In this document: in pieces, positions 14,117 to 24,580 of the stretch | Layout: each line of letters opens with the position of its first letter | Position numbering within the stretch: position 1 is the stretch's first letter | Sequence record: MZ574431.2 | Direction: 5' to 3' (one strand) | Length of the DNA: 64,000 nucleotides | The notes under the pieces: model-generated | Seen by the model: only the letters and a program-made list of their open reading frames with translations | The model's database searches: none | Told to the model about the DNA's origin: nothing | Program-made: the position numbers and the translations under genes

Positions 14117-14118
14117 TT

Positions 14119-14362
14119 TGCCCAAGCGGGCACATCCAATCGAAAGCGCCGGGCAAGAGACTTAGCGGTCTCCAAGCGCCTGGGTCGAGCCAAAAACGCA
14201 GGGGTCGTCGGGTCCGCAAGGACAGCCCTGGTCAGTGAGCGATGGCGGATAAGAAATGGGTCCCAACCTGCTGAAGGTGGTTGGCGCCGCCGAGGGCGTT
14301 ACCTCGGATTTCACGTGACGACACTGCCCCACTGGCTTTTGCCATGCGCGTCCGTTGCTCTA
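14119..14362 (+). ncRNA. Candidate structured ncRNA co-transcribed after tRNA-Asp
   Basis: No credible ORF; nested helices (GAGAC/GTCTC, CAGGG..GTCC-GCAA-GGAC..CCCTG, GAGCGATGG/CCGTTGCTC long-range helix, CCAACC/GGTTGG, CCGAGG/CCTCGG, TGGC/GCCA), followed by a terminator. Confidence 0.6.
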
Positions 14363-14405
14363 GGACCCCAGGACAGGCTAGCCCTCTCCTGGGGTTTCCT
14401 TTTTG
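14363..14405 (+). terminator. Intrinsic terminator ending tRNA operon 1
   Basis: CCCCAGGA...TCCTGGGG stem followed by TTTCCTTTTT. Confidence 0.75.
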
Positions 14406-14431
14406 TGGGACCCAAGAAATTTTTCACGGAT

Positions 14432-14474
14432 TCGTGCATCGTTTCTTGACATCCTCTTGAGCCTGTGTCATAGG
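14432..14474 (+). promoter_or_regulatory. Promoter of tRNA operon 2
   Basis: CGTTTC-TTGACA(14446-51)-N17-CATAGG. Confidence 0.65.
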
Positions 14475-14525
14475 CTCAATCCTCAACAGCCCAGATCGGG
14501 CTTTCACTCCGCCGGAACAAGGTCC

Positions 14526-14645
14526 ATGACCCGCATCCATACCACGCTGACGACCGCCAAGCCCGCCTCCACCGGCGCGCTTACGCTCGCCTCGTGGCCG
14601 GCGTCGAGCAAGCCGCTATTGCGGCACTCAGCGGTTCTCGCCTAA
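14526..14645 (+). CDS. Leader peptide of tRNA operon 2 (MTRIHTTLTTAKPASTGALTLASWPASSKPLLRHSAVLA)
   Basis: AAGG RBS; 33 of 38 non-Met residues are P/T/K/L/H/A/S/W, the amino acids of the 12 downstream tRNAs; overlaps antiterminator helix. Confidence 0.7.
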   Translation: MTRIHTTLTTAKPASTGALTLASWPASSKPLLRHSAVLA

Positions 14646-14700
14646 CAGGCGACCGCTCCGGGTGCCGCTTCTAAGCCGCACCCGATCTCTCCTCCGACAC
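14612..14700 (+). promoter_or_regulatory. Attenuator-like RNA switch of tRNA operon 2
   Basis: Segments 1 GCCGC(14612-16), 2 GCGGCACTC(14621-29), 3 GGGTGCCGC(14660-68), 4 GCACCCG(14678-84); 1:2, 2:3 and 3:4 pairings are mutually exclusive; tail after 3:4 is pyrimidine-rich, not a U-run. Confidence 0.6.
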
Positions 14701-14770
14701 ATCTTCCCAAAACGTCGTAGCTGAACCGGGTGCTCCTGATCTCTCAGGAGATCGCCATCTATTTCAGTTT

Positions 14771-14846
14771 CGGTGTGTAGCTCAGTTGGTAGAGCACGGG
14801 GTTTGGGACCTCGGGGTCGGAGGTTCGAGCCCTCTTGCACCGACCA
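14771..14846 (+). tRNA. tRNA-Pro(TGG)
   Basis: CGGTGTG/TGCACCG acceptor region, CGGGG-TTTGGGA-CCTCG arm, CCA. Confidence 0.92.
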
Positions 14847-14916
14847 ATTCGCCCTCCGCCGGCCTTAGGCCGGACCGCGATCGCTTGAGCGTCGGCGGAG
14901 GCGTGTTCTTTGTCGT

Positions 14917-14995
14917 GCCGGTATAGCTCAGTCTGGTAGTCAGCGACTGCCTCGTAAGCAGTAGGTCCGGGGTTCGAATCCTCGTGCCGGCACCA
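14917..14995 (+). tRNA. tRNA-Thr(CGT)
   Basis: GCCGGTA/TGCCGGC acceptor, ACTGC-CTCGTAA-GCAGT arm, CCA. Confidence 0.92.
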
Positions 14996-15039
14996 CCAAG
15001 AACACGATCAACAGAAGGATCAACAAGACACAGACTTTC

Positions 15040-15126
15040 GGGCGAGTAGCCGAGTGGTTAAAGGCACCTGACTCTTAATCAGGCGTGAGAAATCCTACGT
15101 GGGTTCGAATCCCACCTCGCCCTCCA
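15040..15126 (+). tRNA. tRNA with Lys(CTT) anticodon on a class II (long variable arm) body
   Basis: GGGCGAG/CTCGCCC acceptor, 3-bp D-stem, CCTGA-CTCTTAA-TCAGG arm, 15-nt variable region, U73, CCA. Confidence 0.85.
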
Positions 15127-15213
15127 TCGATAAAGACTTCCATGTTCCCGTACGGGAACATTTCGGCCAGGACAAGGGTCCTGGGATGGAAATGTTCCCG
15201 ATCGGGATCACGG

Positions 15214-15300
15214 GCGGGTGTGGCGAAGTTGGTAGCCGCGCGAGTCTCAGGTACTCGTGGTCGAAAGGCCGGGGAGGTTCGAATCCTCTCACCCGCACCA
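15214..15300 (+). tRNA. tRNA-Leu(CAG)
   Basis: GCGGGTG/CACCCGC acceptor, CGAGT-CTCAGGT-ACTCG arm, long V-arm, A73, CCA. Confidence 0.93.
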
Positions 15301-15312
15301 ACACTCCTCTGG

Positions 15313-15399
15313 GCGGCGCTGGCGGAATGGTAGACGCGCCGGCTTCAAGTCCCGTGTGTCCGTAAGGATGTCCGAGTTCGAATCTCGGGCGCCGCACCA
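15313..15399 (+). tRNA. tRNA-Leu(CAA), imperfect anticodon stem
   Basis: GCGGCGC/GCGCCGC acceptor, CCGGC-TTCAAGT-CCCGT arm (3 WC pairs), long V-arm, CCA. Confidence 0.8.
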
Positions 15400-15442
15400 A
15401 GACGAGGGTTGGCGATGGAAAGCGAAGGTCAAAGCGAGACGT

Positions 15443-15529
15443 GCGGAAGTGGCGTAACGGTAGCCGCGCCAGACTGAGTATCTGGTGATCTAAAGGGTCG
15501 TGGAGGTTCGAGTCCTCTCTTCCGCACCA
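15443..15529 (+). tRNA. tRNA-Leu(GAG)
   Basis: GCGGAAG/CTTCCGC acceptor, CCAGA-CTGAGTA-TCTGG arm (U37), long V-arm, CCA. Confidence 0.9.
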
Positions 15530-15564
15530 AACACAAGGAGAGGTAAGAGACAGATTTGGTTTGT

Positions 15565-15636
15565 GCTGAAATGGCCTAGCGGTAAAGGCGCTGCATTGTG
15601 GATGCAGACACGATGGTTCGAATCCATCTTTCAGTG
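15565..15636 (+). tRNA. tRNA-His(GTG), no G-1, no encoded CCA
   Basis: GCTGAAA/TTTCAGT acceptor (G1:U72), CTGCA-TTGTGGA-TGCAG arm; next tRNA starts 2 nt after position 73. Confidence 0.85.
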
Positions 15637-15637
15637 C

Positions 15638-15713
15638 GGGGATATAGCTCAGTTGGTAGAGCAGTTGCTTTGCAAGCATCAGGTCGTCGGTTCGAGCCCG
15701 ACTATCTCCACCA
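15638..15713 (+). tRNA. tRNA-Ala(TGC)
   Basis: GGGGATA/TATCTCC acceptor with G3:U70, TTTGCAA loop, CCA. Confidence 0.95.
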
Positions 15714-15778
15714 GACCAGGGGACCCAGGCTGCGGCGCCGGATCGGCGACCACCTGGGTCCGTGACAACAAGAAAACT

Positions 15779-15872
15779 GGAGGGCTGGCAGAGCCTGGGT
15801 TAATGCACCCGTTTCGAAAACGGGCAGGGGCTGAAAGGTCCCTCGGGGGTTCAAATCCCTCGCCCTCCGCCA
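15779..15872 (+). tRNA. tRNA-Ser(CGA)
   Basis: GGAGGGC/GCCCTCC acceptor, CCCGT-TTCGAAA-ACGGG arm, long V-arm, G73, CCA. Confidence 0.93.
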
Positions 15873-15891
15873 ACACCAAGCCGGCATCTTT

Positions 15892-15983
15892 GGAAGGATG
15901 GCTGAGCCGGCTGAAAGCACCCGCCTGGAAAGTGGGTCGACCTCACAAGGGTCGCGGGGGTTCGAATCCCTCTCCTTCCGCCA
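15892..15983 (+). tRNA. tRNA-Ser(GGA)
   Basis: GGAAGGA/TCCTTCC acceptor, CCCGC-CTGGAAA-GTGGG arm, long V-arm, G73, CCA. Confidence 0.93.
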
Positions 15984-16018
15984 GATACCGAGCCGGCGCG
16001 GATCGCCGGCCGAAGCTA

Positions 16019-16108
16019 GGTGGGTTGACCGAGTGGTAAGGTGCGCGGTTGCTAACCGCAGGTCAGCCTGGAAGGGCTGCGGGGGTTCGATCCCCTCACC
16101 CACCGCCA
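16019..16108 (+). tRNA. tRNA-Ser(GCT)
   Basis: GGTGGGT/ACCCACC acceptor, TTGCTAA loop, long V-arm, G73, CCA. Confidence 0.93.
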
Positions 16109-16123
16109 TAGCTTCGACGATGC

Positions 16124-16200
16124 AGGGGTGTAGCTCAACTGGCTAGAGCGTCGGTCTCCAAAACCGAAGGTTGCGGGTTCGAGTCCCGCCGCCCCTGCCA
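16124..16200 (+). tRNA. tRNA-Trp(CCA)
   Basis: AGGGGTG/CGCCCCT acceptor, TCGGT-CTCCAAA-ACCGA arm, G73, CCA. Confidence 0.95.
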
Positions 16201-16222
16201 ACATTTTCCGCGATTCAGGACC

Positions 16223-16501
16223 ATGACCAAGAAAGGAGGACCCCTGATGAAACCCGCACCCACTATGACCCAATGCCGCTTGACGCGCGGTGACCAGGGC
16301 GTCCAAGTCTCCTGGATTCCCAGCGAGTTCGCCCAGGTCGGCCGCATCGTCGATCTGAAGGAAAAGGACTACTGGTCCAACGGCTGGCGGGTCGACCAGA
16401 CCTGGGGCACCATGGACGCCAGCGTGATCGCCGATCGCAGTCGAGATCACCTCAACCACAGCAAGGCCACCGGCGATCGATGGCCCACCGCCCGCGCCTA
16501 G
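16223..16501 (+). CDS. Hypothetical protein at end of tRNA operon 2 (alternative start ATG 16247 has the stronger AGGAGG RBS)
   Basis: GC3-rich codons, RBS, followed by terminator. Confidence 0.7.
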   Translation: MTKKGGPLMKPAPTMTQCRLTRGDQGVQVSWIPSEFAQVGRIVDLKEKDYWSNGWRVDQTWGTMDASVIADRSRDHLNHSKATGDRWPTARA

Positions 16502-16504
16502 CGC

Positions 16505-16539
16505 AAAAAGGCCGCCCAGGTCTCCCTGGGCGGCCTTTC
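16505..16539. terminator. Bidirectional intrinsic terminator
   Basis: AAAAAGGCCGCCCAGG-TCTC-CCTGGGCGGCCTTT. Confidence 0.85.
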
Positions 16540-16544
16540 ACGTT

Positions 16545-17045
16545 CTAGGCGTGTGGTGGGAAGTCACCCGTCAGGACGCCCGCCGTGCGCGCGTAGCAGA
16601 ACCAGTAGGAGCCGGTCCAGCGCAGCATGGCCACTTCGGGGACATGCACGGCCTCGACAAGGCGTTGATAGCCTGTGCCATCGCCCTCAGTATCCGCTTT
16701 GCCGTCCATATCCACATCAGGCTGCGAGGCCTGGGGAACCTGTAAGGTCAGAGCCGCCGAAACATCGGAGAAGACGATGCGAGGGTTTGCGACCCCGTAG
16801 TGAGGACGTGCGAAGACGACAACCTGAGAGGAGCCAAAGGCCGTATTTGTCCTCGGATAGAACTGAAGCTGAAGCTCATCGCCGACTTCCGTCGCCGGCA
16901 TGAGCGAAGCGTAGAAGGACCCTTGAAACGGTTGATCGGGATCGACTTGCTTCGTGTAGATGTCGATGATGCCGACCTCGCCATTGGCGTTCAGGATTTC
17001 GGCGGCGGCCTCGTAGACCGTGTTGATGACGATGGTTCTGGACAT
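16545..17045 (-). CDS. Hypothetical protein, paralogue B (166 aa)
   Basis: Shares PHYGVANPRIVF, (M/F)DGKAD(T/V)EGDG(T/P)GYQRL and LRWTGS(Y/F)WFCYAR blocks with 17066..17551. Confidence 0.8.
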   Translation of the reverse strand: MSRTIVINTVYEAAAEILNANGEVGIIDIYTKQVDPDQPFQGSFYASLMPATEVGDELQLQFYPRTNTAFGSSQVVVFARPHYGVANPRIVFSDVSAALTLQVPQASQPDVDMDGKADTEGDGTGYQRLVEAVHVPEVAMLRWTGSYWFCYARTAGVLTGDFPPHA

Positions 17046-17065
17046 GTGTCTGGTTACCCTAGGCT

Positions 17066-17551
17066 TTAGAGTGAGAGGCTGTCAGTGGTCATCATGCCGA
17101 GCGAGCGGGCATAACAGAACCAGAACGAGCCCGTCCACCGAAGGAGTGCAACGAGAGGGACGCCGGGGGCTTCGCCCAAGCGCTGGTAGCCAGGACCATC
17201 ACCCTCGACGTCAGCCTTGCCGTCGAAGTCCAGGTCTTTCTGCTCTATCGCACCCGCGTACAGAGCCATAGCATCTGTGATGTTCGGCGCACGATCAGCG
17301 AAAACGATCCTCGGGTTGGCCACACCATAGTGCGGCAAGGCGAAGATCAGCACGGTAGCGAAGCTACCCTTGCTGGCGGGGAAGACCTGAACCTGGAGGT
17401 CGTCTCCGACCTCTCGACCGGGAGCGAGGGCGGCGTAGAGAAAGCCACCACCGATTTCAGGAATGATGTTGATCACCCCTTTGAGGCCGTTGGGATTTAT
17501 CGGCTCAGCTAATTGCCGTTCGGTGGCGCGCACCAGCACGTTCATCGCCAT
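17066..17551 (-). CDS. Hypothetical protein, paralogue A (161 aa, start MAMNV)
   Basis: AAGGA RBS before ATG 17551; homology to the neighbour begins after this start; the longer 17821 start crosses a terminator. Confidence 0.8.
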   Translation of the reverse strand: MAMNVLVRATERQLAEPINPNGLKGVINIIPEIGGGFLYAALAPGREVGDDLQVQVFPASKGSFATVLIFALPHYGVANPRIVFADRAPNITDAMALYAGAIEQKDLDFDGKADVEGDGPGYQRLGEAPGVPLVALLRWTGSFWFCYARSLGMMTTDSLSL

Positions 17552-17671
17552 CGGGAGTCTATCCTTAGGAAGGCCGGCCCAGCGCCGGCAAAGCTCCCTA
17601 CCCGATCTAGGAACACCGATCGACCCAAGATCGCAAACTATCCACAGCAACTTTTGCGACAGTCTAACGAC

Positions 17672-17700
17672 AAAAAGAAAGGCTCCCGAAGGAGCCTTCC
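17672..17700 (-). terminator. Intrinsic terminator (minus strand)
   Basis: AAGGCTCC-TTCG-GGAGCCTT-TCTTTTT on minus strand. Confidence 0.85.
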
Positions 17701-17703
17701 AAA

Positions 17704-18060
17704 TCACGCCATCGCTGCGTTGCGTTTCCCGCGCTGCTTTTCCAACGCGGCCTCCATCGACTGCCAAACGAGCCGAGGCCGCCACGGCTCCTCGTTGTAA
17801 GGCGTGTCCAGGTAGCACCACCCCTCGCTAGGGGTCGCCAGGATCGGAAGACCTTCGAAGTCTTCGTCCTGCTGCTCCTCGGGGGTCAAACGCCGCGTCG
17901 ACCAACGCAACCCGCCGCTCGGCAGTTTGGCGAATTCCAGGCCGCTAGGATCGCGGTCCTCGTCGAGGATGTCGAAGAGTTCGGTGAGGTCCTGGGCATT
18001 GACCAGGAAGGCCTCGGTCTGTTCGTCGGGATCGATCGCCCGCACGAGATAGAGCGCCAT
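17704..18060 (-). CDS. Acidic hypothetical protein (118 aa, start MALYLV)
   Basis: GGAG RBS, GC3-rich codons, bracketed by two near-identical terminators. Confidence 0.75.
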   Translation of the reverse strand: MALYLVRAIDPDEQTEAFLVNAQDLTELFDILDEDRDPSGLEFAKLPSGGLRWSTRRLTPEEQQDEDFEGLPILATPSEGWCYLDTPYNEEPWRPRLVWQSMEAALEKQRGKRNAAMA

Positions 18061-18147
18061 GGGTGTCTCCTTTGTAGGCAAAGCCAAGGTGGGAGACAAG
18101 GACCGGGTTGTCCAGGCACTATAGTGCTGAAAAGAGGTCCAGACACG

Positions 18148-18173
18148 AAAAAGGGCTCCCGAAGGAGCCCCTT
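18148..18173 (-). terminator. Intrinsic terminator ending the large ncRNA
   Basis: GGGCTCC-TTCG-GGAGCCC-TTTTT on minus strand. Confidence 0.85.
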
Positions 18174-18174
18174 G

Positions 18175-19016
18175 CGTAGGGTTCAAAGGCTTGAGACACT
18201 AGGGCCTTCACGACGAGACCTCAGGGATTATCCTTGTTCAGGTTCCCCTGGGTGTCCAGGAGCCTTTCGGCTTCTCTGTCCCGCCAACGACGGTCATTTT
18301 AGGTCCACCACAGACCGTCCTGATGTACTACTCAGCCTCTCCACTACCATCAAAGGCTGGCCGGCCCTCAAAGGAAGCTTCCTGACACTCGTTACGACAC
18401 CTTGCGAGGTCCCGCAACGTCCCTGCTAAGCCGAAGCCCAGGGAACGTAGTCGTCTATTGCACACCAGCGGCCAGACTTTCGCTTTTGCTTCGTCAGCCA
18501 AATGATGATTGGAGGTTGGTTTACGCCCCCAGCTTGCCTTCCCTAGTGACGACGTGCTGTCCAGAGCTTCGTGGCTTTTGGCCACAAAATACTCGACGCC
18601 GTCCTGATCCCTAGATGGGACCGATCTGATCCGATTACCCCTCCAGGTGCTTTTCACACCCAGCTTGGAACCCAGAACAAATTGGGTCTCGCCCTAAGCC
18701 GGTATCACTCCGACCTCGAACTGTCGCAGATAGCTGTCGCTGATCCGCCCCCTACACCTGAATCCTCGTCCACTCGGTCGTTTGAGTTGACATGTCCGGT
18801 GGTTCTCAGGCCACACCAGAGCGTCTCACGACGCCTTTCGAACACATCACGACCTCATCGACTATCCTCCACCCCCGCTTTTAACGGGCTATGAAGGACG
18901 GGCTGGTTAGACCCGGTCTTCGATGCCTGCTTGAGTGGTCCCGGTTGCCCAGGCGACGAGGGGTAGGTCCCCCGCCCAGCCTCCGAGTTGCCCCGGCGGC
19001 CCCGCTCTCAAGCGAT
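18175..19016 (-). ncRNA. Large ornate ncRNA candidate (GOLLD/ROOL class), ~840-870 nt
   Basis: Bounded by a minus-strand promoter and terminator; no ORF with the phage codon bias; many minus-strand GNRA/UUCG-capped hairpins and long-range helices. Confidence 0.75.
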
Positions 19017-19022
19017 GACTGG

Positions 19023-19051
19023 GTTGTAGACGGACGATTTCCGGCGGTCAA
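19023..19051 (-). promoter_or_regulatory. Promoter of the large ncRNA
   Basis: Minus strand TTGACC-N17-TACAAC. Confidence 0.75.
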
Positions 19052-19094
19052 CAGCCAAATCGCACTTTTTTCGAAAAAGTTTCGATCGGCGTCG

Positions 19095-19137
19095 CGATGA
19101 CGCGTTTCTTGACCCGCCCTTCGCGATCAGGCAGAAC
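19095..19137 (+). promoter_or_regulatory. Divergent promoter with phage motif
   Basis: GATGACGCGTTTC-TTGACC(19109-14)-N17-CAGAAC. Confidence 0.6.
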
Positions 19138-19139
19138 CA

Positions 19140-19473
19140 TCGGCGAGGGCGCCACGCGTAGTGGAAGAATCCGTGATCCCGCCCAAGGCGACGCCGCGTA
19201 TCGACCTACGGTCATGCGCAATAGGCCGACCCTAAGCCGCATCGCGTCGACTACCTGCATGCTCCAGGCACTGAGCAAATCCCGGTCCGGCGGACATCCC
19301 ACGAAGCTGGTGGAGATAACCGGAGGTTACCGTTCCTGTGGAGCGGATGGAAGGAAGGGTCTCAGTCGAGCCCTGGTAGGCCGTCCAGCCAGTAGCGCTG
19401 CTGTCTGGGTCCGGGACCGCCCAATCGACGACTCGCGAAAAGAGCCCGGCTGGTTTCGCGGCTGGCCGGGCTC
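19140..19473 (+). ncRNA. Candidate structured ncRNA divergent from the large ncRNA
   Basis: ~330 nt after a promoter; TCCCGG/CCGGGA and CGGAC/GTCTG long-range helices enclose several hairpins; terminal GAGCCCGGC/GCCGGGCTC stem. Confidence 0.5.
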
Positions 19474-19494
19474 ACTAACCGCTTGAGAACCCTC

Positions 19495-19818
19495 ATGATC
19501 GACAACACCTTCATCCAGGCCGACGGCCCGCTCTATCTGACGCTGGAAGCGGCCCTGGAGGCGCCCGGCGCGATCTACACCCACGTCAAGAAGGGCGGCA
19601 TCTATCGCCGTATGGGTGAGGCCAAGTACGCCGGCGACGCGGCGGCCCAGACGCTGGAAGGCGTGATGATGGCCGTCTATGAGCACCTCTACCCATACGC
19701 GCACTCCTTCTTTGTGCGTCCTCAAAGTGAGTTTGTCGAGGTCGTGCGGACCCAGCATGGCGAGCACCGCCGTTTCGTCTTTCACACCAATGAGATACTG
19801 ACCGTTCTCGACACTTGA
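19495..19818 (+). CDS. DUF1653-like small protein (107 aa)
   Basis: IYTHVKKGGIY...VYEHLY...FFVRPQSEF...RRF matches the YxHxKG..Y / VY..LY / xVRP..F / RF pattern of DUF1653. Confidence 0.65.
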   Translation: MIDNTFIQADGPLYLTLEAALEAPGAIYTHVKKGGIYRRMGEAKYAGDAAAQTLEGVMMAVYEHLYPYAHSFFVRPQSEFVEVVRTQHGEHRRFVFHTNEILTVLDT

Positions 19819-19920
19819 GGGTACGTGAGACCCCATACCGTGCCCTGCGGCATGGTGACGCAATCCTTGACTTGGCCTACGATCTAGGGTAGAGACGAGA
19901 CCCTCTCTCCCAAGGAAATC

Positions 19921-21645
19921 GTGATGCTCAAGCCGCAAGCCTCTTCGCGGCGCGCGCGCCTCGCGCCCGCGTCGATCCCCATCATTCCGGCTGACATCGC
20001 CCTGGTCGGCGCGGTCATCCCCGCCGGCAGTCCGGCCGGGACCCTGGTCGGCACGCTGAGCGCGCTACCGGCCGCCGGCGACTACGAGTTCACCCTACTC
20101 GACAGCGCGGGCGGGCGCTTTGCCATTCAGGGCTCGGCCCTGGTCGCGGGCGCCACGCCTTCGGCCGGTGGGGAGAACCCGACGATTACCGTGCGCACCA
20201 CGGCGGCGTTCTCGCGACTGACGTTCGACAAGACCTTCTCGATCGCTGTCCAGACCGTCGTCGCCCCGATCACGCTGTCGCCGACCAATCCGACCGTCGC
20301 CGAGAACACTGCTGCCGGCGTGACGGTCGCGTCGATTTCCTCGCCCGGCGCGACCTTGAGCCTGACCGACAATGCCGGCGGCCGGTTCGCCATCAGCGGG
20401 ACCAATCTGGTCACCGGCGCGACGGCGACCAACTATGAGGTGGCCACCAGCCACGATGTGACCATCCGCGCCGAGTATAACGGCGATGTGACGACCAAGA
20501 CCGTGACGGTCCAGGTCTCCAACGTCGTCGAGATCACCAATATCACCCTGGCCGCCAGCAGCATCCCCGAGAACTCGGCCGCCGGCGTGGTCGTCGGGCA
20601 ACTGGCCTCGGTCCCGCCCGGTGCGGCCCTGACCCTGACCGACAGCGCCGGCAGCCGCTTTGCCATCGACGGCAGCAACCGTCTCGTGGCTGGCTCGGTC
20701 GCCACGGACTACGAGACCAACACCACACACGACGTCTCCGTGCGCGCCACCCAAGGCCCCGACGTCTACAACAAGACCTTCACCATCAGCGTCACCAACG
20801 TCAATGAACTGACCGACATCACCCTGTCGGCCAATTCGATCGCCGAGAACTCGGCCGCTGGCGTCGTGGTCGGCAACCTCGCCAGCGTGATCCCCGGCGC
20901 CTCGTTCGCTGTGACCGGCCAGACGCCGTCAGGGACCTACTTCACCGTCAACGGCTCCAACCAGCTTGTGACTGGGGCGACGGCGACCAACTTCGAAGTC
21001 AATGCCAGCCACTCGGTCACCGTCACCGCGACCAAGGGCACCGACACCTTCCAAAAGACCTTCACGATCAACGTCAGCAACCAGACCGAGATCACCGACA
21101 TCAGCCTGAGCAACGCCAGTATCAACGAAGGTGTCGCCCAGGGCACCGCCGTCGGCACCCTGTCGTCGACCCCGACGGGCGCGACCTTCTCCTTGGCGCC
21201 AACCAACCCTGCGGGCACGCGCTTCCAGGTCTCGGGCACGACGCTGCAACAAGGCGCGACGCCGAACGATCGCGAAGCCACGCCGACCGTGACGGTGAAG
21301 ATTCGCGGCACGCGCCAGAGCGAAACCTTCGACAAGGATTTCGTCATCACCATCAACAACGTCGTCGAACTGACCGACTTCACGCTGTCGGGCCTGACGA
21401 TCGACGAGAACGCCGTCCAGGGCACTCCGGTGGGGACGCTGTCGTCGACCCCGACGGGCGCGACCTACACCCTGAACGACAATGCCGGCGGGCGCTTCCA
21501 GCTTGTCGCCGGCGCCATCCAGGCCGGCGCGGTGGCGACCGACTTCGATACCGCCACCAGCCACGACATCATCGTCACAGCCTCCCGAGGCGGCGAGACG
21601 ATGCAGAAGACCTTCACGATCACGGTCAACGACCTCGGCGACTAG
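19921..21645 (+). CDS. Cadherin-like repeat protein (574 aa), probable virion decoration/adhesin
   Basis: Five to six ~95-aa repeats: ITLS..SI.EN...G..VG.L....DNAGGRF......L......(N/D)(Y/F)E....HD(V/I)T.....FDKTFTI.V.NV; own promoter (TTGACT 19867) and terminator. Confidence 0.85.
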   Translation: MMLKPQASSRRARLAPASIPIIPADIALVGAVIPAGSPAGTLVGTLSALPAAGDYEFTLLDSAGGRFAIQGSALVAGATPSAGGENPTITVRTTAAFSRLTFDKTFSIAVQTVVAPITLSPTNPTVAENTAAGVTVASISSPGATLSLTDNAGGRFAISGTNLVTGATATNYEVATSHDVTIRAEYNGDVTTKTVTVQVSNVVEITNITLAASSIPENSAAGVVVGQLASVPPGAALTLTDSAGSRFAIDGSNRLVAGSVATDYETNTTHDVSVRATQGPDVYNKTFTISVTNVNELTDITLSANSIAENSAAGVVVGNLASVIPGASFAVTGQTPSGTYFTVNGSNQLVTGATATNFEVNASHSVTVTATKGTDTFQKTFTINVSNQTEITDISLSNASINEGVAQGTAVGTLSSTPTGATFSLAPTNPAGTRFQVSGTTLQQGATPNDREATPTVTVKIRGTRQSETFDKDFVITINNVVELTDFTLSGLTIDENAVQGTPVGTLSSTPTGATYTLNDNAGGRFQLVAGAIQAGAVATDFDTATSHDIIVTASRGGETMQKTFTITVNDLGD

Positions 21646-21648
21646 CAG

Positions 21649-21674
21649 AAAGCCCGGCTCCGGCCGGGCTTTTT
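21649..21674 (+). terminator. Intrinsic terminator
   Basis: AAAGCCCGGC-TCCG-GCCGGGCTTTTT. Confidence 0.85.
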
Positions 21675-21749
21675 CGTTGACGGCGTCATTGCGCCGCTTA
21701 TGGTGGCCTCACGGCGGAGAGATCGCGCCGTTCAGAAGGAGAAACCACC

Positions 21750-22283
21750 ATGACCATGATCGTCAAGATCATGACGGGCCATGACCTGCCCGACGATTCC
21801 CCCTACAAGACCTTCACCCTGGTGTCCGAAGTCAAGAGCGCGACATTCCACACCCAGGAAGACAGTGAGGGCCGGCGCCACTCCTACATGCGCGCCTACA
21901 TCGCTGATCCGGTCAAGACCGCCGAGGTCCCCGGTTTCAGCGAGCACGAAGTGGTCTATGACATCCCGCCCAACGTCAACGTCTACGTGATGAACGGCAA
22001 CGGCAAGACCATCTCGTCCTGGACCGCGCCGCCCGTGGCCGAGGGAAAGTTCACCTTTTCCGCTTCGGCGCCGATCAAATTTGTCGACGTCAGCCGTGAC
22101 ACCCTCTACGGGCGCATGGAAGCCTACTGCAAATATCGGGCAAATGGGTTCACCGCGATCAAGGCTGCCCTGGCCAGCGGCTTTCCTGATCCGACCAAGG
22201 TGATCGACGCGCTGGAAGCCGACCCACTCCTCATCTCCAGGATCGAGGAACTTTCGGCCCAGGCGTCCACCTCGACGACCTAG
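21750..22283 (+). CDS. Hypothetical protein (177 aa)
   Basis: AAGGAG RBS, typical codon bias. Confidence 0.75.
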   Translation: MTMIVKIMTGHDLPDDSPYKTFTLVSEVKSATFHTQEDSEGRRHSYMRAYIADPVKTAEVPGFSEHEVVYDIPPNVNVYVMNGNGKTISSWTAPPVAEGKFTFSASAPIKFVDVSRDTLYGRMEAYCKYRANGFTAIKAALASGFPDPTKVIDALEADPLLISRIEELSAQASTSTT

Positions 22284-22309
22284 GCCGGACGGGCCTGTCG
22301 AAAAACACG

Positions 22310-22357
22310 CGTCACGATGTCGTATTTCTTGACAGGCCCAAAAGCCTCCTGTATAAG
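22310..22357 (+). promoter_or_regulatory. Promoter of tRNA operon 3
   Basis: GATGTCGTATTTC-TTGACA-N17-TATAAG; predicted TSS at or next to leader ATG 22365 (leaderless). Confidence 0.8.
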
Positions 22358-22364
22358 CCCCGTT

Positions 22365-22463
22365 ATGAGCAAGTCGTATCGTCAATTTGTGCGCCAGATT
22401 CAGTTCGTCCGAGTTAATCGGGCGGGCCGTTCGCGCATGGATGATGGTGGGACCCGAGTGTAG
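22365..22463 (+). CDS. Leader peptide of tRNA operon 3 (MSKSYRQFVRQIQFVRVNRAGRSRMDDGGTRV)
   Basis: Codons 5-18 are all read by the eight downstream tRNAs; antiterminator segment begins immediately after. Confidence 0.75.
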   Translation: MSKSYRQFVRQIQFVRVNRAGRSRMDDGGTRV

Positions 22464-22535
22464 GGTCCAAAGACCTCTCAATCCATTTCTGCGAAGGCCC
22501 GCCCAGGTAACCCCTCGGCGGGCCTTCTGCGTTTT
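22420..22535 (+). promoter_or_regulatory. Attenuator: antiterminator/terminator of tRNA operon 3
   Basis: Terminator GAAGGCCCGCC(22493-503)/GGCGGGCCTTC(22517-27)+TGCGTTTT; competing helix GGGCGGGCC(22420-28)/GGCCCGCCC(22496-504), extended by ATGGAT/ATCCAT. Confidence 0.8.
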
Positions 22536-22591
22536 CACCCTTCGTTTTCATCCGGTAGCGAGCGAGATCATGACCGGAAACTAACCCCTTC

Positions 22592-22681
22592 GGGTCGGCA
22601 GGTGGGCACTGGCATGAGCCCAAGGGACTGTAACTCCCCCGTCGAAAGGCTGTGTAGGTTCGAGTCCTACCCGACCCACCA
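22592..22681 (+). tRNA. tRNA-Tyr(GTA), atypical acceptor/D-arm junction
   Basis: GGGTCGG/CCGACCC acceptor, GGGA-CTGTAAC-TCCC arm, V-arm, A73, CCA; 5-nt linker CAGGT before D-stem. Confidence 0.85.
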
Positions 22682-22714
22682 TTCTTCCGTGGAGCCCGAG
22701 TAAACGGCCTCTGC

Positions 22715-22786
22715 GCTTCAGTAGCTCAGTGGTAGAGCGCCGTCTTGACATGGCGGAGGTCGAAGGTTCGAACCCTTCCTGAAGCA
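22715..22786 (+). tRNA. tRNA-Val(GAC), no encoded CCA
   Basis: GCTTCAG/CTGAAGC acceptor, CCGTC-TTGACAT-GGCGG arm; abuts tRNA-Ile. Confidence 0.9.
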
Positions 22787-22787
22787 C

Positions 22788-22863
22788 GCTAGGTTAGCTC
22801 AGTTGGTAGAGCACCGGACCGATAATCCGGTTGTCACAGGTTCGAGCCCTGTACCTAGCACCA
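22788..22863 (+). tRNA. tRNA-Ile(GAT)
   Basis: GCTAGGT/ACCTAGC acceptor, CCGGA-CCGATAA-TCCGG arm (C33), CCA. Confidence 0.92.
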
Positions 22864-22978
22864 AACACTTATACGCTTTACCGTATAAAGTAAAAATATA
22901 CGATCTAGCGTATAAAATGACTTGAACTTACCGAATTCGGTAAATAAAAAGAGGTGAACAGAGGAAAGGACAAGTAAC

Positions 22979-23053
22979 GGGCCGGTAGCTCAGTGGTAGA
23001 GCGCTGCTGTCACATAGCAGATGTCGAGTGTTCGAGACACTCCCGGCCCACCA
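22979..23053 (+). tRNA. tRNA-Val(CAC)
   Basis: GGGCCGG/CCGGCCC acceptor, CTGCT-GTCACAT-AGCAG arm (G32), CCA. Confidence 0.92.
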
Positions 23054-23060
23054 GTTCAGT

Positions 23061-23134
23061 TGAAGCATGGTGTAATGGTAGCACATCAGAGTTTGGTTCT
23101 GGGAGTCTAGGTTCGAGTCCTAGTGCTTCAGCCA
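23061..23134 (+). tRNA. tRNA-Gln(TTG)
   Basis: TGAAGCA/TGCTTCA acceptor (U1:A72), TCAGA-GTTTGGT-TCTGG arm, G73, CCA. Confidence 0.92.
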
Positions 23135-23188
23135 ACTGAAAGAGTTTCAGGTCTCATGTGACGAGATCAGGAGAGAGAAGGCGAGTTT

Positions 23189-23263
23189 TTCCGAGTAGCT
23201 CAGCGGTAGAGCAGCGTGCTGTTAACACGACGGTCGGTGGTTCGATCCCACCCTCGGGAGCCA
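23189..23263 (+). tRNA. tRNA-Asn(GTT)
   Basis: TTCCGAG/CTCGGGA acceptor, CTGTTAA loop, G73, CCA. Confidence 0.93.
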
Positions 23264-23278
23264 TTACTTCTTCTCCAC

Positions 23279-23357
23279 GCCCGGTTAGCTCAGCGGAATT
23301 AAGAGCAGACGCCTACGAAGCGTAAGGTCGGGGGTTCGAATCCCTCACCGGGTGCCA
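23279..23357 (+). tRNA. tRNA-Arg(ACG)
   Basis: GCCCGGT/ACCGGGT acceptor, CTACGAA loop, CCA. Confidence 0.93.
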
Positions 23358-23386
23358 TTTTCACGTATGCAGTGCTTCGGCCCTGC

Positions 23387-23461
23387 GGGGATGTAGCTCA
23401 GTGGTAGAGCGGGAGACTGAAAATCTCCGCGTCGGTGGTTCGACCCCACCCTTCCCCACCA
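23387..23461 (+). tRNA. tRNA-Phe(GAA)
   Basis: GGGGATG/CTTCCCC acceptor, GGAGA-CTGAAAA-TCTCC arm, CCA. Confidence 0.93.
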
Positions 23462-23480
23462 GTTCTCGGTGACCGCGAGG

Positions 23481-23515
23481 CGGCCGTCAGGATGTTCGAT
23501 CCTGGCGGCCTTTTT
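23481..23515 (+). terminator. Intrinsic terminator ending tRNA operon 3
   Basis: GGCCGTCAGGA-TGTTCGA-TCCTGGCGGCC-TTTTT. Confidence 0.85.
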
Positions 23516-23607
23516 CATGCCCGTGGTTCAGTGAACGTCGGCCTCTCGACATTGAGGCGAGTTCTGGATTAGGTAAAACGTCAGGATGTATTTACGACCC
23601 ACGTCAC

Positions 23608-23649
23608 CGTGACGCAAATCTTGACATCTATCAGAGCTTCCCCTACCCT
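23608..23649 (+). promoter_or_regulatory. Promoter with phage motif
   Basis: GTGACGCAAATC-TTGACA(23621-26)-N17-TACCCT. Confidence 0.7.
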
Positions 23650-23763
23650 GCAAGCACATTTTCAATGGCTCAAGTCGGGGACGAGAGCATGGCCCATGCC
23701 CATCAGCGTCCTCCCGAAGCGGCCTCGGAGGAAACCGAGCAAACGCCGCAAAGGACAAATGCC

Positions 23764-23859
23764 ATGAAGACGCTCATTGAGCGCCTGCGAGCGGCCCACC
23801 TGGAGGCCGAAGCCGAGCGCGTTGCCCAGTACCTGTCCGCGCAAGCCTTGGAGGCCTAA
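23764..23859 (+). CDS. Small hypothetical protein (31 aa)
   Basis: AAGGA RBS, helical amphipathic sequence, ends 3 nt before next gene. Confidence 0.5.
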   Translation: MKTLIERLRAAHLEAEAERVAQYLSAQALEA

Positions 23860-23862
23860 GCT

Positions 23863-24207
23863 ATGACTTCCCAGGCCAACAATACCGCGCAGGCGCGTGA
23901 GCGTCACCTGCAAATCCAACTCTTCGAGACGATCAACGACAAGCTCGACAAGGTCGACGTCCGCTTCGACAAGGTCGAGGACCGCTTCGACAAGCTGTCG
24001 GACTCGATCACCGACGTCTCCACGCGCCTGACGCGCATCGAAGCCTCGGACGTGGCGTCCCGCGTCCAGAAGCTCGAAGACAGCCTTCACGAGAACGATC
24101 GCCGGATCACCAAGCTGGAGACGATCCTGCTGCCGGTGACGGGTCTGGGCTCGGCCCTGGCCGGCGCCCTCGCCACCTGGGTTTTCGGTTTGTTCCCGCA
24201 TGCTTAA
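23863..24207 (+). CDS. Coiled-coil protein with C-terminal transmembrane segment (XhlA/holin-like architecture)
   Basis: GGAGG RBS; DKLDKVDVRFDKVEDRFDKL heptads; hydrophobic C-terminus. Confidence 0.7.
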   Translation: MTSQANNTAQARERHLQIQLFETINDKLDKVDVRFDKVEDRFDKLSDSITDVSTRLTRIEASDVASRVQKLEDSLHENDRRITKLETILLPVTGLGSALAGALATWVFGLFPHA

Positions 24208-24355
24208 GGTTTAACGGCTAAGCTTAGGCGACCTGAAGGTGCGTCAAACGACCTCAGGTTAATTTTTCATAAACACGCCTTCGCACCTCTTGTTCCTTCC
24301 GAAACAGTCGGTAGGGTCGATCCAACAAATCGATCCGGCGTTTTGAGGAGAGAAC

Positions 24356-24580
24356 ATGCTGGCCGCCGTTTCCGTTCCCGACCACCTGGAAAATTTTGAT
24401 CTCCAGGAGGCGGTTGATCAGGCCCAAGGAAGCCTGATCGTGTCGTCCACCCAGCTTTCTGAACTGAGTGCGGAACCCCTGTCTGACACGGGTGTCGCGC
24501 GTCTGGTCAAGCTGGTCGCCCAGATCAATCACGATCTCTCGGCGACTGTCGAGGCCTGGAAAGCCAGTAATCCAGTGTAG
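24356..24580 (+). CDS. Hypothetical protein (74 aa)
   Basis: GAGGAG RBS, helical. Confidence 0.65.
   Translation: MLAAVSVPDHLENFDLQEAVDQAQGSLIVSSTQLSELSAEPLSDTGVARLVKLVAQINHDLSATVEAWKASNPV

Follow-up and report, generated by a model that had tools for sequence, protein, structure and literature searches.

What controls the expression of a tRNA array that a phage carries? The debate so far has been about why phages carry tRNAs at all, with codon bias, decay of host tRNAs and escape from anticodon nucleases as the proposed answers, and phage arrays have also been viewed as a way to offset the depletion or cleavage of host tRNAs; to our knowledge, how phages regulate these genes is essentially unknown. 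The question is raised by a stretch of 64,000 nucleotides from sequence record MZ574431.2 (the window), whose source is a Bertelyvirus (a Caulobacter jumbo phage of the C1/RB23 type). One of its tRNA operons, operon 3, lies behind a promoter, a short open reading frame and a hairpin. An earlier note, made from the letters of this DNA, had read the arrangement as an attenuator whose leader codons match its own operon, and that central claim is supported here by conservation of the ORF, by covariation, by restricted amino acid replacements and by sister leaders in front of other tRNA operons. We consider it quite probable, from sequence comparison and folding models, that a ribosome-mediated leader-peptide transcription attenuator controls operon 3.

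Results

Eight tRNA genes behind a putative leaderless reading frame

The promoter, the reading frame and the genes of operon 3 are the following.

22329-22357, plus strand: operon-3 promoter, with -35 TTGACA at 22329-22334, a 17-nt spacer and -10 TATAAG at 22352-22357
22365-22463, plus strand: predicted leader ORF of 32 aa (MSKSYRQFVRQIQFVRVNRAGRSRMDDGGTRV), with ATG at 22365 and stop codon TAG at 22461-22463
22592-22681, plus strand: tRNA-Tyr(GTA), type II and non-canonical with an odd D arm (relaxed ARAGORN; tRNA-Sec model, 29.6 bits; covariation)
22715-22787, plus strand: tRNA-Val(GAC) (ARAGORN, Rfam)
22788-22863, plus strand: tRNA-Ile(GAT) (ARAGORN, Rfam)
22864-22978, plus strand: AT-rich spacer with three conserved palindromes
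22979-23053, plus strand: tRNA-Val(CAC) (ARAGORN, Rfam)
23061-23134, plus strand: tRNA-Gln(TTG) (ARAGORN, Rfam)
23189-23263, plus strand: tRNA-Asn(GTT) (ARAGORN, Rfam)
23279-23357, plus strand: tRNA-Arg(ACG) (ARAGORN, Rfam)
23387-23461, plus strand: tRNA-Phe(GAA) (ARAGORN, Rfam)
23482-23515, plus strand: intrinsic terminator at the end of the operon, a 12-bp stem followed by TTTTT (terminator scan)

Seven of the eight tRNAs were found by ARAGORN together with Rfam. The remaining one, tRNA-Tyr, was missed by default ARAGORN and by the Rfam tRNA model; its alignment across seven phages has compensatory changes in 9 of 22 pairs and an invariant anticodon loop, CTGTAA. Relaxed ARAGORN also returned low-scoring Tyr and Phe tRNAs in Colossus, PW, Domovoi and Kabachok, and once such relaxed calls are counted the amino acid set of operon 3 is identical in all lineages. 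The 'Ile-AAT' tRNA of the phiCbK group is actually Asn-GTT (loop CTGTTAA). The spacer at 22864-22978 may act as a processing site or as an internal operator or promoter, and in the latter case it could uncouple the five distal tRNAs.

The positions given earlier for the promoter and for the ORF at 22365 hold in the sequence. The promoter belongs to a phage promoter class, TTCTTGACA, exact copies of which occur only at 11654, 14443 and 22326, each with a tRNA operon downstream. TTGAC is unchanged in 12 of 12 aligned phages, and the distance from the hexamer to the ATG is fixed at 30-31 nt (in the source phage, ATG 22365 lies 30 nt past TTGACA). This spacing suggests that transcription starts at or adjoining the A of ATG 22365, and the leader ORF is probably leaderless, with its AUG at or beside +1. 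Caulobacter has many leaderless mRNAs and translates them efficiently (PMC4117421). The ATG is invariant in the 12 aligned phages, the stop keeps its position and the indels are all of 3 nt, a pattern that points to translation. The in-frame ATG at 22317 was rejected as a start, as it lies upstream of the -35 hexamer, would make the ORF span the promoter and is not conserved; also set aside, as a GC-rich artefact, was a minus-strand ORF of 268 aa (21732-22538) that overlaps an annotated plus-strand gene and is unannotated in every record.

Leader codons match the tRNAs of their own operon

Within the ORF lies the run of codons on which the match to the operon depends.

22377-22418, plus strand: codons 5-18, the putative control run, all 14 read by the operon's eight tRNAs

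With the eight tRNAs located and standard wobble rules applied, the earlier statement that 14 consecutive codons are read by the downstream tRNAs, with every one of them represented, is confirmed. The codons are TAT CGT CAA TTT GTG CGC CAG ATT CAG TTC GTC CGA GTT AAT, and the tRNAs are Tyr-GTA, Val-GAC, Ile-GAT, Val-CAC, Gln-TTG, Asn-GTT, Arg-ACG (read as ICG) and Phe-GAA (8/8). These tRNAs can read 16 codons, 13 of which occur in the run. As the 16-codon set makes up 23% of trinucleotides, a 14-codon run is expected at about 1e-9 per position; this one is the longest in the window in six frames (the runner-up has 8 codons), and the longest matching run in Markov simulations (n=60) was at most 12. 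All eight tRNAs are covered within 14 codons at only 3 places in 128 kb. Chance is excluded as the source of the codon match. GC3 is 0.43 in the run and 0.857 in phage genes (p ~7e-4 given the peptide). The run is biased to A/T-ending codons, which are rare in this GC-rich system.

The other tRNA operons of the phage have comparable elements.

14446-14645, plus strand: sister element of the 12-tRNA operon, with TTGACA at 14446-14451 and a 39-aa leader ORF at 14526-14645; operon at 14771-16200
13810-13952, plus strand: Glu/Asp mini-element, with TTGACA at 13810-13815, a 21-aa ORF at 13846-13911 containing one GAG and one GAT, and alternative hairpins

Because the amino acid set of operon 3 is constant, covariation between leader codons and anticodons was examined on the sister operon. 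Leaders of the 12-tRNA type have a cognate codon for every tRNA of their operon (7 phages, 4 genera), with TGG only where the operon has Trp-CCA and AAA only where it has Lys-TTT, so that the co-variation predicted in the earlier note is seen there. The two leader types are cross-specific in four genera (Fisher p from 3e-7 to 2e-10). The 12-tRNA leader of phiCbK resembles a five-segment switch with a canonical terminator, that of the source phage has several overlapping hairpins and no canonical U-tract or terminator was found in it, and in the Glu/Asp mini-leader the final hairpin overlaps the 5' end of tRNA-Glu, leaving no room for a separate terminator.

The run varies mostly within the amino acid set of the operon

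The leader element is present in 45 Caulobacter and Brevundimonas phage records, and 12 phages from several genera were aligned. Pattern scans of IMG/VR and metagenomes for distant relatives gave only known isolates and chance GC-rich terminators. Across lineages, 12 of 13 replacements in the run stay within Y/R/Q/N/F/V/I (p = 2.5e-5), and many of them are chemically radical (F/N, V/R, V/N/F), which argues that the run is selected for membership in this set and not for the function of the peptide. Seven codon changes between genera are of the synonymous type. Colossus has its run in a different order and again matches at 14/14 codons, its low-scoring Tyr and Phe tRNAs counted. The match is imperfect in some lineages: no Tyr tRNA or Arg-ACG was found in the phiCbK group, yet TAT, CGT and CGC are retained; the BL9 run contains TCG (Ser); and the Bajun run has CGC and CGA without Arg-ACG. 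Within Bertelyvirus conservation is near-total at the nucleotide level, with almost no synonymous changes, and this could be explained by RNA structure alone.

Mutually exclusive helices link the leader ORF to a predicted terminator

The RNA from the control run to the first tRNA can be divided into segments that pair in alternative ways.

22403-22412, plus strand: core of segment 1 (GUUCGUCCGA), the putative anti-antiterminator strand, whose extended 5' arm reaches back to 22377
22418-22442, plus strand: segment 2, in which UCGGGCGGGC pairs with segment 1 and GGGCGGGCC (22420-22428) plus an extension to 22442 pairs with segment 3
22450-22468, plus strand: apical hairpin GGGACC/GGGUCC (-12.2 kcal/mol), with the leader stop UAG (22461-22463) in or at its loop
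22483-22507, plus strand: segment 3, in which GGCCCGCCC (22496-22504) and its flanks pair with segment 2 (antiterminator) or segment 4 (terminator)
22513-22536, plus strand: segment 4, the 3' arm of the terminator to 22531, and U-tract UUUUC

As the earlier note had said, GGGCGGGCC is the exact reverse complement of GGCCCGCCC in the 5' arm of the terminator. Both the 2:3 and the 3:4 helices show compensatory changes. The classical attenuator geometry that it described stands for segments 2, 3 and 4; segment 1 (22403-22412, extending to 22377) had been missed, and because this segment pairs with GGGCGGGCC the default state would be one that terminates. Calculated stabilities are -15.5 kcal/mol for the core 1:2 helix and -34.4 for its extended form, -52.6 kcal/mol for the antiterminator with its apical hairpin, and -30.8 kcal/mol for the terminator hairpin (22490-22531), which is followed by UUUUC and lies ahead of the first tRNA. 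A simple consensus terminator scan did not flag this hairpin, because the U-tract is short and interrupted in the source phage (CCUUCUGCGUUUUC; UUCUGCGUUUUC); the relatives have a canonical U-tract, CCUUUUCUUUU, at the same position, as a GC stem followed by UUUUCUUUU. They also retain the stem of the apical hairpin, with a variable loop, and in the 12 aligned phages the leader stop falls within this hairpin.

Covariation in the helices is modest, as there are only about 7 independent lineages, and has the following form. The 1:2 helix is paired in 80.8% of cells (34-45% in slid controls), and two of its closing pairs show GC/AU exchanges. Pairing in the 2:3 core reaches 87%, with GC in 8 and AU in 3 at column 99-180 and with GU in 7, GC in 3 and UA in 1 at column 97-182. 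The 3:4 helix is 86% paired, with column 180-198 as CG in 9, UA in 2 and UG in 1. Column 180 of segment 3 (C/U) thus covaries with both segment 2 (G/A) and segment 4 (G/A).

The full leader is predicted to fold as the 1:2 helix plus the terminator (P(3:4) = 0.96, z = -5.4). When the footprint of a ribosome is masked with its A site at codons 12-15, P(2:3) becomes 0.78-0.93, and masking at codon 6 also flips the equilibrium. Stalls at codons 7-10 leave the core of segment 1 free. At codons 16-18 (CGA, GTT, AAT) a ribosome with a standard footprint covers segment 2, the antiterminator strand, and termination is favoured. In the source phage a modelled stall thus shifts the fold towards the antiterminator at codons 12-15 (and 6) and away from it at codons 16-18, so that the 14 codons, all of which match, are not equivalent. 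For phiCbK, Magneto, Colossus and PW, masking the full-length leader never flips the equilibrium; the decision would therefore have to be kinetic, as in trp. We do not count this as a refutation, because the terminators of classical attenuators too are more stable than their antiterminators, and we take the snapshot before segment 4 exists to be the relevant state. In that snapshot the 2:3 helix is favoured in 9 of 9 lineages tested unless a ribosome sits on segment 2.

Discussion

A model for operon 3

In the model presented here, host RNA polymerase would start at or beside the A of ATG 22365, and a 70S ribosome would load on the leaderless 5' AUG and read the 32-codon ORF, sampling in codons 5-18 the 13 of 16 codons that the operon's tRNAs can read. 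With a fast ribosome, or none, segment 2 would be covered or paired with segment 1; segment 3 would then pair with segment 4, and transcription would end at about 22532-22536, ahead of tRNA-Tyr. A ribosome lingering in the run (best with its A site at about codons 11-15) would instead cover segment 1 and leave segment 2 free to capture the emerging segment 3 as the antiterminator, and polymerase would enter the tRNA genes. What the leader would sense is the charged pool of the operon's own isoacceptors, which would make the leader a negative-feedback supply meter whose output would go up with slow decoding (early infection, high demand, loss of host tRNAs) and fall as phage tRNAs accumulate.

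We infer termination, the sign of the response and its physiological trigger from sequence and folding. The leader may possibly respond to tRNA depletion, the trigger that the earlier note had favoured in the form of depleted host tRNAs or anticodon nucleases; product feedback is the more economical reading, because the leader would read the total charged pool, phage tRNAs included. Each phage tRNA operon would bear a leader and a codon list of its own. We lean towards extending this to the Dolichocephalovirinae of Caulobacter and Brevundimonas, in which each tRNA operon would lie behind its own leader with about one codon per tRNA, the ribosome would meter decoding capacity over many channels and the tRNA genes would be autoregulated by attenuation.

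Other readings of the locus

It is barely credible that the match between codons and tRNAs is a compositional coincidence, the regulatory stretch being AT-rich and so encoding, when translated, amino acids whose codons are AT-rich. The tRNAs of operon 3 do mostly serve such amino acids, and the low GC3 of the run reflects its AT-richness, but the length of the run is unique both in the window and beside the simulations, the sister leader, which is GC-rich, matches the different tRNA set of its own operon, and the cross-specificity of the leaders and their restricted replacements speak against coincidence as well. Very improbable, too, is an independent micro-gene, with a promoter, a small protein and a terminator of its own, next to a tRNA operon transcribed from elsewhere. 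Homologous ORFs are indeed annotated as hypothetical proteins in some records (Domovoi and Kabachok; for the sister leader, BL9 gp149 and phiCbK gp335). However, the stretch between the terminator and tRNA-Tyr is not conserved, and a promoter-class scan and the 12-phage alignment gave no conserved promoter motif there; radical amino acid replacements are tolerated; none of the three leader peptides matched a PHROG family, and a protein database search with the 48-aa version from the upstream ATG, used because the 32-aa peptide is below the length usable in such a search, gave no homologue. A micro-gene would also leave unexplained why an arm of the terminator can pair alternatively with the ORF.

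That the ORF is incidental to a structured non-coding leader RNA, either a switch that binds protein or tRNA or an sRNA released by termination, is decidedly unlikely. The scarcity of synonymous changes within Bertelyvirus and the very stable fold (the z-score given above) would suit such an RNA, and attenuator-derived sRNAs are known, for example rnTrpL in Sinorhizobium (PMC6614838). Nothing in such a model predicts a match to the tRNA set, though, and it is opposed by the conserved ATG and stop, the exclusively in-frame indels, the seven synonymous-type changes between genera, the confinement of replacements to the operon's amino acids, the covariation of TGG and AAA in the sister leader with tRNA content and the absence of any Rfam match, T-box included. 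A translated regulatory ORF whose output is something other than intrinsic termination (Rho access, processing or stability of the precursor, or folding of the first tRNA) is unlikely as well. The weak U-tract of the source phage, the mini-leader whose last hairpin runs into its tRNA and the 12-tRNA leader that has no canonical terminator in the source phage all point that way. They are to be set against the textbook terminators of the relatives at the same position, the covarying 3:4 helix and the sharing of segment 3 by two alternative helices, a hallmark of termination control. We thus retain the ribosome-mediated attenuator as the preferred reading.

Relation to known regulatory systems

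Multivalent attenuators are familiar from enterobacteria, where the ilvGMEDA leader has Leu, Val and Ile codons and the thr leader Thr and Ile codons; trp, his, leu and pheA are further cases. The attenuation model of Yanofsky is summarised in PMC4007540. As is proposed for the phage leader, these attenuators have a short translated leader whose control codons lie in segment 1 or directly ahead of it, their 1:2, 2:3 and 3:4 helices are alternatives, an intrinsic terminator precedes the first structural gene, the decision is a kinetic one made by ribosome position, and one leader can sense more than one amino acid. They differ in that the phage leader would regulate tRNAs and not biosynthetic enzymes, so that the product is the sensed molecule, and in that it lists seven amino acids (eight isoacceptors) with about 1-2 codons each, whereas theirs is a run of one to three kinds. 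The phage leader is, moreover, apparently leaderless and phage-borne, and its stop codon comes 33 nt after segment 2 and falls in the loop at the apex of the antiterminator. An Rfam cmscan (E <= 1, 11500-24500) matched no amino-acid leader family and no T-box; the element appears to work like the Rfam leader families and is not a sequence member of them.

Closer in function is pheM-pheST of E. coli, a leader-peptide attenuator of aminoacyl-tRNA synthetase genes. In Deinococcus deserti, leaderless leader peptides have been predicted before cysS and other genes (PMC4007540). Attenuators of synthetase genes, like the phage leader, control the decoding machinery and not metabolism, and the Deinococcus leaders begin at the 5' AUG of the transcript, as is proposed here. 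Synthetase leaders, however, respond to a single amino acid and control a gene for a protein, while the phage leader would regulate untranslated tRNA genes through the codons of the whole operon. T-boxes bind tRNA directly, without translation, via a specifier codon and the T-box sequence. They too sense the charging or availability of specific tRNAs and have a terminator/antiterminator switch, but their reader is the RNA itself and that of the phage element would be the ribosome.

Among tRNA arrays, the L-array (trn operon) of Anabaena PCC 7120 is induced by stress, with regulation through direct repeats overlapping the promoter and a putative repressor (PMC8421152). It is, like the phage operon, supernumerary and horizontally mobile, and would share with it a silent default state and induction by impaired translation; unlike for the phage operon, no leader ORF or attenuator is described for it (PMC8421152). 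The phiCbK genome paper covers the same tRNA clusters as are discussed here, viewing the arrays as codon-usage compensation; its account has no RNA element besides tRNAs, neither leader ORFs nor a switch, and reports no tRNAs for Tyr or Thr and, except in Colossus, none for Asn (PMC3556154). The phiCbK annotation does place 'predicted rho-independent terminators' just upstream of the arrays, left uninterpreted. The earlier note knew of no description of such control for phage tRNA arrays, and our literature search likewise found none of leader-peptide control of tRNA genes.

If the model is correct, this would be the first case found of tRNA genes controlled by leader-peptide attenuation, and it would carry attenuation of the Yanofsky type over to non-coding RNA genes and to as many as eight or, in the sister operon, twelve isoacceptors. 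The leaders predict cross-specific responses, with limitation for Ile, Val or Phe inducing operon 3 and limitation for Ser, Leu or Thr inducing the 12-tRNA operon, and C. crescentus with phiCbK or CcrBL9-type phages is a laboratory model in which the idea can be tested directly. The leaders could act as natural reporters of codon-specific translation speed, and their pattern offers a search image for similar elements before the tRNA arrays of other phages and of plasmids. For the phage itself, tRNA output would rise automatically when host tRNAs are depleted or are cleaved by defence nucleases. The phage would be measuring decoding speed codon by codon and supplying tRNAs on demand, and no feedback loop could be shorter, since its product would also be its signal.

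The leader of tRNA operon 3 and its codon run

A promoter-like sequence and a short ORF stand ahead of the eight-tRNA operon 3 (22592-23461), and the RNA offers four strands (segments 1-4) for pairing:

22329-34: -35 hexamer TTGACA
Promoter spacer: 17 nt
22352-57: -10 hexamer TATAAG
22365 (ATG) to 22461-63 (TAG): leader ORF, 32 codons
22403-12: segment 1, GUUCGUCCGA, pairs with segment 2 in a long hairpin
22418-27: segment 2, UCGGGCGGGC, pairs with segment 1; the 1:2 helix extends to 22377/22450
22490-22507 with 22513-22531: terminator helix 3:4, followed by UUUUC

Codons 5-18, the run, read TAT CGT CAA TTT GTG CGC CAG ATT CAG TTC GTC CGA GTT AAT. By standard wobble pairing (G34 with C/U, C34 with G, U34 with A/G, and A34, as inosine, with U/C/A) the eight operon-3 tRNAs decode 16 codons; all 14 codons of the run lie inside this set, and between them they use all eight tRNAs and 13 of the 16 codons. 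The set makes up 23% of trinucleotides, which gives such a run an expectation of about 1e-9 per position. It is the longest run of set codons among the six frames of the window, the runner-up being 8 codons, and the longest in 60 first-order Markov simulations of 64 kb each was 12; 14-codon windows touching all eight tRNAs occur at 3 places in 128 kb. The third base is A or T in eight of the 14, which puts GC3 at 0.43 as against 0.857 in 20 long phage ORFs (p about 7e-4 for codon choice given the peptide), and the run looks designed as a sample of the codon list, rare codons included. An earlier note made from the sequence had described the promoter, the ORF and codons 5-18, in every respect correctly on re-inspection, and its match of the 14 codons to eight tRNAs, all represented, holds under these wobble rules.

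Alternative folds and the position of the ribosome

The full leader (22365-22545) is predicted to form two structures, at -81.3 kcal/mol (z = -5.4). If the RNA ends before segment 4, segment 2 together with its 3' flank (22417-42) pairs instead with segment 3 (22483-22507), in a fold that encloses a small hairpin bearing the stop codon. The predicted energies are -34.4 kcal/mol for the extended 1:2 helix and -15.5 for its core, -52.6 for 2:3 including the apical hairpin and -30.8 for 3:4. As modelled, this is the classical layout of anti-antiterminator (1:2), antiterminator (2:3) and terminator (3:4). The earlier note had seen segments 2, 3 and 4 and overlooked segment 1 (22403-12), the strand that in the predicted folds makes the untranslated leader terminate.

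Pair probabilities were computed with a 28-nt footprint mask (from -15 to +12 of the first base of the A site) placed at every codon. Without a ribosome, P(2:3) is 0.0 and P(3:4) 0.96. P(2:3) rises to 0.72 with the A site at codon 6 and to 0.78-0.93 at codons 12-15; it is 0.0 at codons 16-31, where P(3:4) is 0.93-0.97, 0.05 at codon 32 (P(3:4) 0.90) and 0.02 at the stop codon (P(3:4) 0.94). The terminator forms at codons 16-26 because the mask covers segment 2 partly or wholly. In masked folding, a ribosome stalled in the middle of the run would thus free the antiterminator, as proposed, and one stalled at codons 16-18, the end of the run, would not, a distinction missing from the earlier note. 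For phiCbK, Magneto, Colossus and PW no position of the mask flips the full-length equilibrium, and in all nine lineages tested a transcript ending just before segment 4 prefers 2:3 unless a ribosome sits on segment 2; together these predictions imply that the choice between terminator and antiterminator must be kinetic, as in trp.

Conservation of the leader among related phages

Positions 21700-23700 are 100% identical to the Caulobacter phages RB23, J4, C1, C2 and BL47 (Bertelyvirus, about 312 kb, host C. vibrioides CB15) and about 78% identical to CcrBL9 (BL9) and CcrSC (SC); none of these records carries an annotation between gp142, the upstream gene (21750-22283), and tRNA-Val. A small hairpin at 22281-22296 (AGGCC GGAC GGGCCU) abuts the stop codon of the upstream gene; its stem is kept in BL9 and SC, its loop is variable and no U-tract follows. 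With a 226-nt query the operon-3 element was found in 45 phage records (37 Caulobacter, 2 Bertelyvirus sp., 6 Brevundimonas), in several of which a 'terminator' is annotated beneath the match.

Twelve leaders were aligned, from Bertelyvirus, Poindextervirus, Shapirovirus, Colossusvirus and three Brevundimonas phages. TTGAC is invariant, as is an ATG 30-31 nt 3' of the hexamer; the ORF has two indels, each of 3 nt, and the stop codon lies within the apical hairpin in 12 of 12. GG(G/A)CGGGCC, GGCCCG(C/U)C and the 3' arm are nearly invariant, and the relatives' terminator tract is a clean UUUUCUUUU. Paired cells amount to 80.8% for the 1:2 helix (34-45% in slid controls), with GC/AU exchanges at two closing pairs; to 87% for the 2:3 core (column 99-180: GC 8, AU 3; column 97-182: GU 7, GC 3, UA 1); and to 86.3% for 3:4 (column 180-198: CG 9, UA 2, UG 1). 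One segment 3 base covaries with both of its alternative partners, as is already evident between the window and BL9/SC. With only about seven independent lineages, these pair counts are supportive rather than overwhelming for all three helices.

Across lineages the run has undergone at least 13 amino-acid replacements, including F/N, V/R, V/N/F and N/F/I, exchanges that one would not expect any peptide function to withstand. Of the 13, twelve keep to the set Y, R, Q, N, F, V, I (p = 2.5e-5 against 21/61 codons), the sole exception being TCG in BL9. The Colossus run, YRNNVRQIRVRQFN, has another order, and the Colossus operon can decode all of it if its low-scoring Tyr and Phe tRNAs are included.

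The tRNA genes of operon 3

ARAGORN and Rfam detect seven of the eight tRNAs; Tyr-GTA (22592-22681) is detected by ARAGORN at a relaxed threshold only, and the Rfam tRNA-Sec model scores it at 29.6 bits. Since seven phages keep its cloverleaf, with compensatory changes at 9 of 22 pairs and an invariant CTGTAA anticodon loop, it is a genuine tRNA. Relaxed detection recovers Phe, Val, Ile, Val, Gln, Asn and Arg tRNAs in operon 3 of every lineage and Tyr in most, including, between leader and tRNA-Val, low-scoring Tyr-GTA in Colossus, PW, Domovoi and Kabachok, and low-scoring Phe-GAA in these four, BL10 and Bajun. Even so, Tyr and Arg-ACG were not found in the phiCbK group, nor Arg-ACG in Bajun, although its leader has CGC and CGA. 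The phiCbK-group 'Ile-AAT' (3096-3170 in phiCbK) has the anticodon loop CTGTTAA and is a misread Asn-GTT. Standard callers miss or misname several of these phages' tRNAs, and published inventories are probably incomplete: according to the phiCbK genome paper there are no Tyr or Thr tRNAs, and Asn occurs in Colossus only (PMC3556154); the relaxed scans suggest that the tRNAs called absent exist in non-canonical form.

An AT-rich 115-nt spacer (22864-22978) between tRNA-Ile and tRNA-Val(CAC) holds three palindromes, which BL9 and SC share and of which the window has no further copies:

22870-87 and 22897-914: TATACG-N6-CGTATA
22928-43: TTACCGAATTCGGTAA

They look like operator sites or processing hairpins, and TTGAAC-N17-TAAAAA in the same spacer is a possible internal promoter. 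The operon-end terminator stem GGCCGUCAGGAUGUUCGAUCCUGGCGGCC (23482-23510) includes GUUCGAUCC, a T-arm-like motif, and may be a tRNA remnant.

Sister leaders

As the amino-acid set of operon 3 is constant, its covariation with the leader cannot be assessed there. The promoter word TTCTTGACA occurs exactly three times in the window (11654, 14443, 22326), each time 5' of a tRNA operon, and with one mismatch at 13807. Two further ORFs lie ahead of tRNA genes:

14526-14645: sister leader ORF, 39 codons, MTRIHTTLTTAKPASTGALTLASWPASSKPLLRHSAVLA, 3' of the promoter word at 14443
13846-13911: third ORF, 21 codons, begins 30 nt downstream of TTGACA and lies ahead of tRNA-Glu and tRNA-Asp

The sister leader precedes a 12-tRNA operon (Pro, Thr, Lys, three Leu, His, Ala, three Ser, Trp). 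Thirty-three of its 39 residues belong to the operon's amino-acid set, and it holds a cognate codon for all 12 tRNAs, a coverage reached at 6 places in 128 kb. Leaders of this type are too divergent for good alignment; in BL9, SC, Colossus, PW, Rogue and phiCbK every operon tRNA has a codon in the sister leader. The covariation of leader codons with anticodons that the earlier note had put forward as a check is found here: TGG is present in Bertelyvirus alone, the sole lineage with Trp-CCA in this operon (elsewhere Trp lies in a separate Trp-Gly-Gly cluster), and AAA in Rogue and phiCbK alone, the sole ones with Lys-TTT. The two leader types are cross-specific, with Fisher p from 3e-7 to 2e-10 in four genera and 5.7e-6 at codon level within the window. 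In phiCbK a canonical terminator follows the sister leader, its 5' arm GCGGCUCC complementary to upstream GGAGCCGC, and additional pairings extend back into the ORF; in the window hairpins are present and the terminator is not canonical.

The operon-2 region of the window agrees with C1, C2 and J4 rather than RB23, which relative to 14648-14662 has a 15-nt tandem duplication, ACCGCTCCGGGTGCC, directly 3' of the leader stop codon: a natural variant of the switch region, within the leader hairpins, that leaves the ORF unaltered. The 12-tRNA leader has four ACC codons, readable by Thr-GGT only; BL9 (756-828) and SC (503-575) carry tRNA-Thr(GGT) directly after tRNA-Gly in the first tRNA locus, and ARAGORN finds none in the window phage (window locus 12536-12610). 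Between the second tRNA operon and the next structural gene, in a 1.4-kb stretch unannotated in the C1 record, 18187-18604 (minus strand) matches the GOLLD large ornate RNA (RF02032) over the full model length with 104 bits (E = 4.6e-27), below the gathering score of 150.

The third ORF shares its TTGACA-to-start spacing with the operon-3 leader and has one GAG just 5' of a small hairpin and one GAT 3' of it (YEREA..GRDT in relatives); three overlapping hairpins covary between genera, the last using the 5' end of tRNA-Glu. As a Glu/Asp leader it is suggestive only.

Discussion

The simplest account of the operon-3 element, and quite probably the right one, is a ribosome-mediated attenuator. 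The core of the earlier interpretation, a leader peptide whose codons match the operon's tRNAs, is supported by features legible in the sequence, namely the ORF, the codon match, the helices and their evolution. It is unlikely that a translated leader acts instead through Rho, processing or tRNA folding, which would suit the weak U-tract of the window phage but is at odds with the relatives' canonical terminators and the covarying 3:4 helix. Somewhat less likely still is an RNA-only switch or sRNA: synonymous change is nearly absent within Bertelyvirus, as this would have it, but it predicts neither the in-frame indels and fixed start and stop nor the set-restricted replacements and the TGG/AAA covariation, and no Rfam family, T-box included, matches. 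An independent micro-gene is improbable, given the radical replacements, the lack of protein homologues or families in our searches and of a conserved promoter between terminator and tRNA-Tyr. That the codon match is a compositional coincidence is hardly credible, as the GC-rich sister leader matches a different tRNA set.

For the attenuator we infer a transcription start, translation of the ORF, termination and a response to tRNA supply. A leaderless start is plausible, since C. crescentus translates 375 leaderless mRNAs as well as leadered ones (PMC4117421); in Deinococcus, leader peptides with leaderless starts have been proposed for attenuators (PMC4007540). The leader would sense the total charged pool, host and phage, for the listed codons: slow decoding of these partly rare codons would open the operon, and accumulating phage tRNAs would close it, so that the circuit would primarily be a product-feedback loop. 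Degradation or cleavage of host tRNAs, the trigger envisaged earlier, would likewise raise output, and the default reading is feedback rather than defence.

By function the operon-3 leader is, on this reading, a Yanofsky-type attenuator, although by sequence it belongs to no Rfam leader family. Its nearest known counterparts are the multivalent ilvGMEDA and thr leaders and the synthetase attenuator pheM-pheST. The Anabaena L-array, the one tRNA operon known to answer translational stress, is controlled at the promoter by repeats and without a leader ORF (PMC8421152). The phiCbK genome paper annotates terminators and reports no RNA element besides tRNAs (PMC3556154). Leader-peptide control of tRNA genes, which the earlier note had not known described for phage tRNA arrays, is described nowhere that we found in full-text literature whose coverage leaves out most subscription journals. 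Three points are new: the target is tRNA genes, so that the product is also the signal; the leaders list eight and twelve isoacceptors, each about once; and all this takes place in a phage, where every operon has a leader of its own. The attenuator reading of the operon-3 leader is directly testable.
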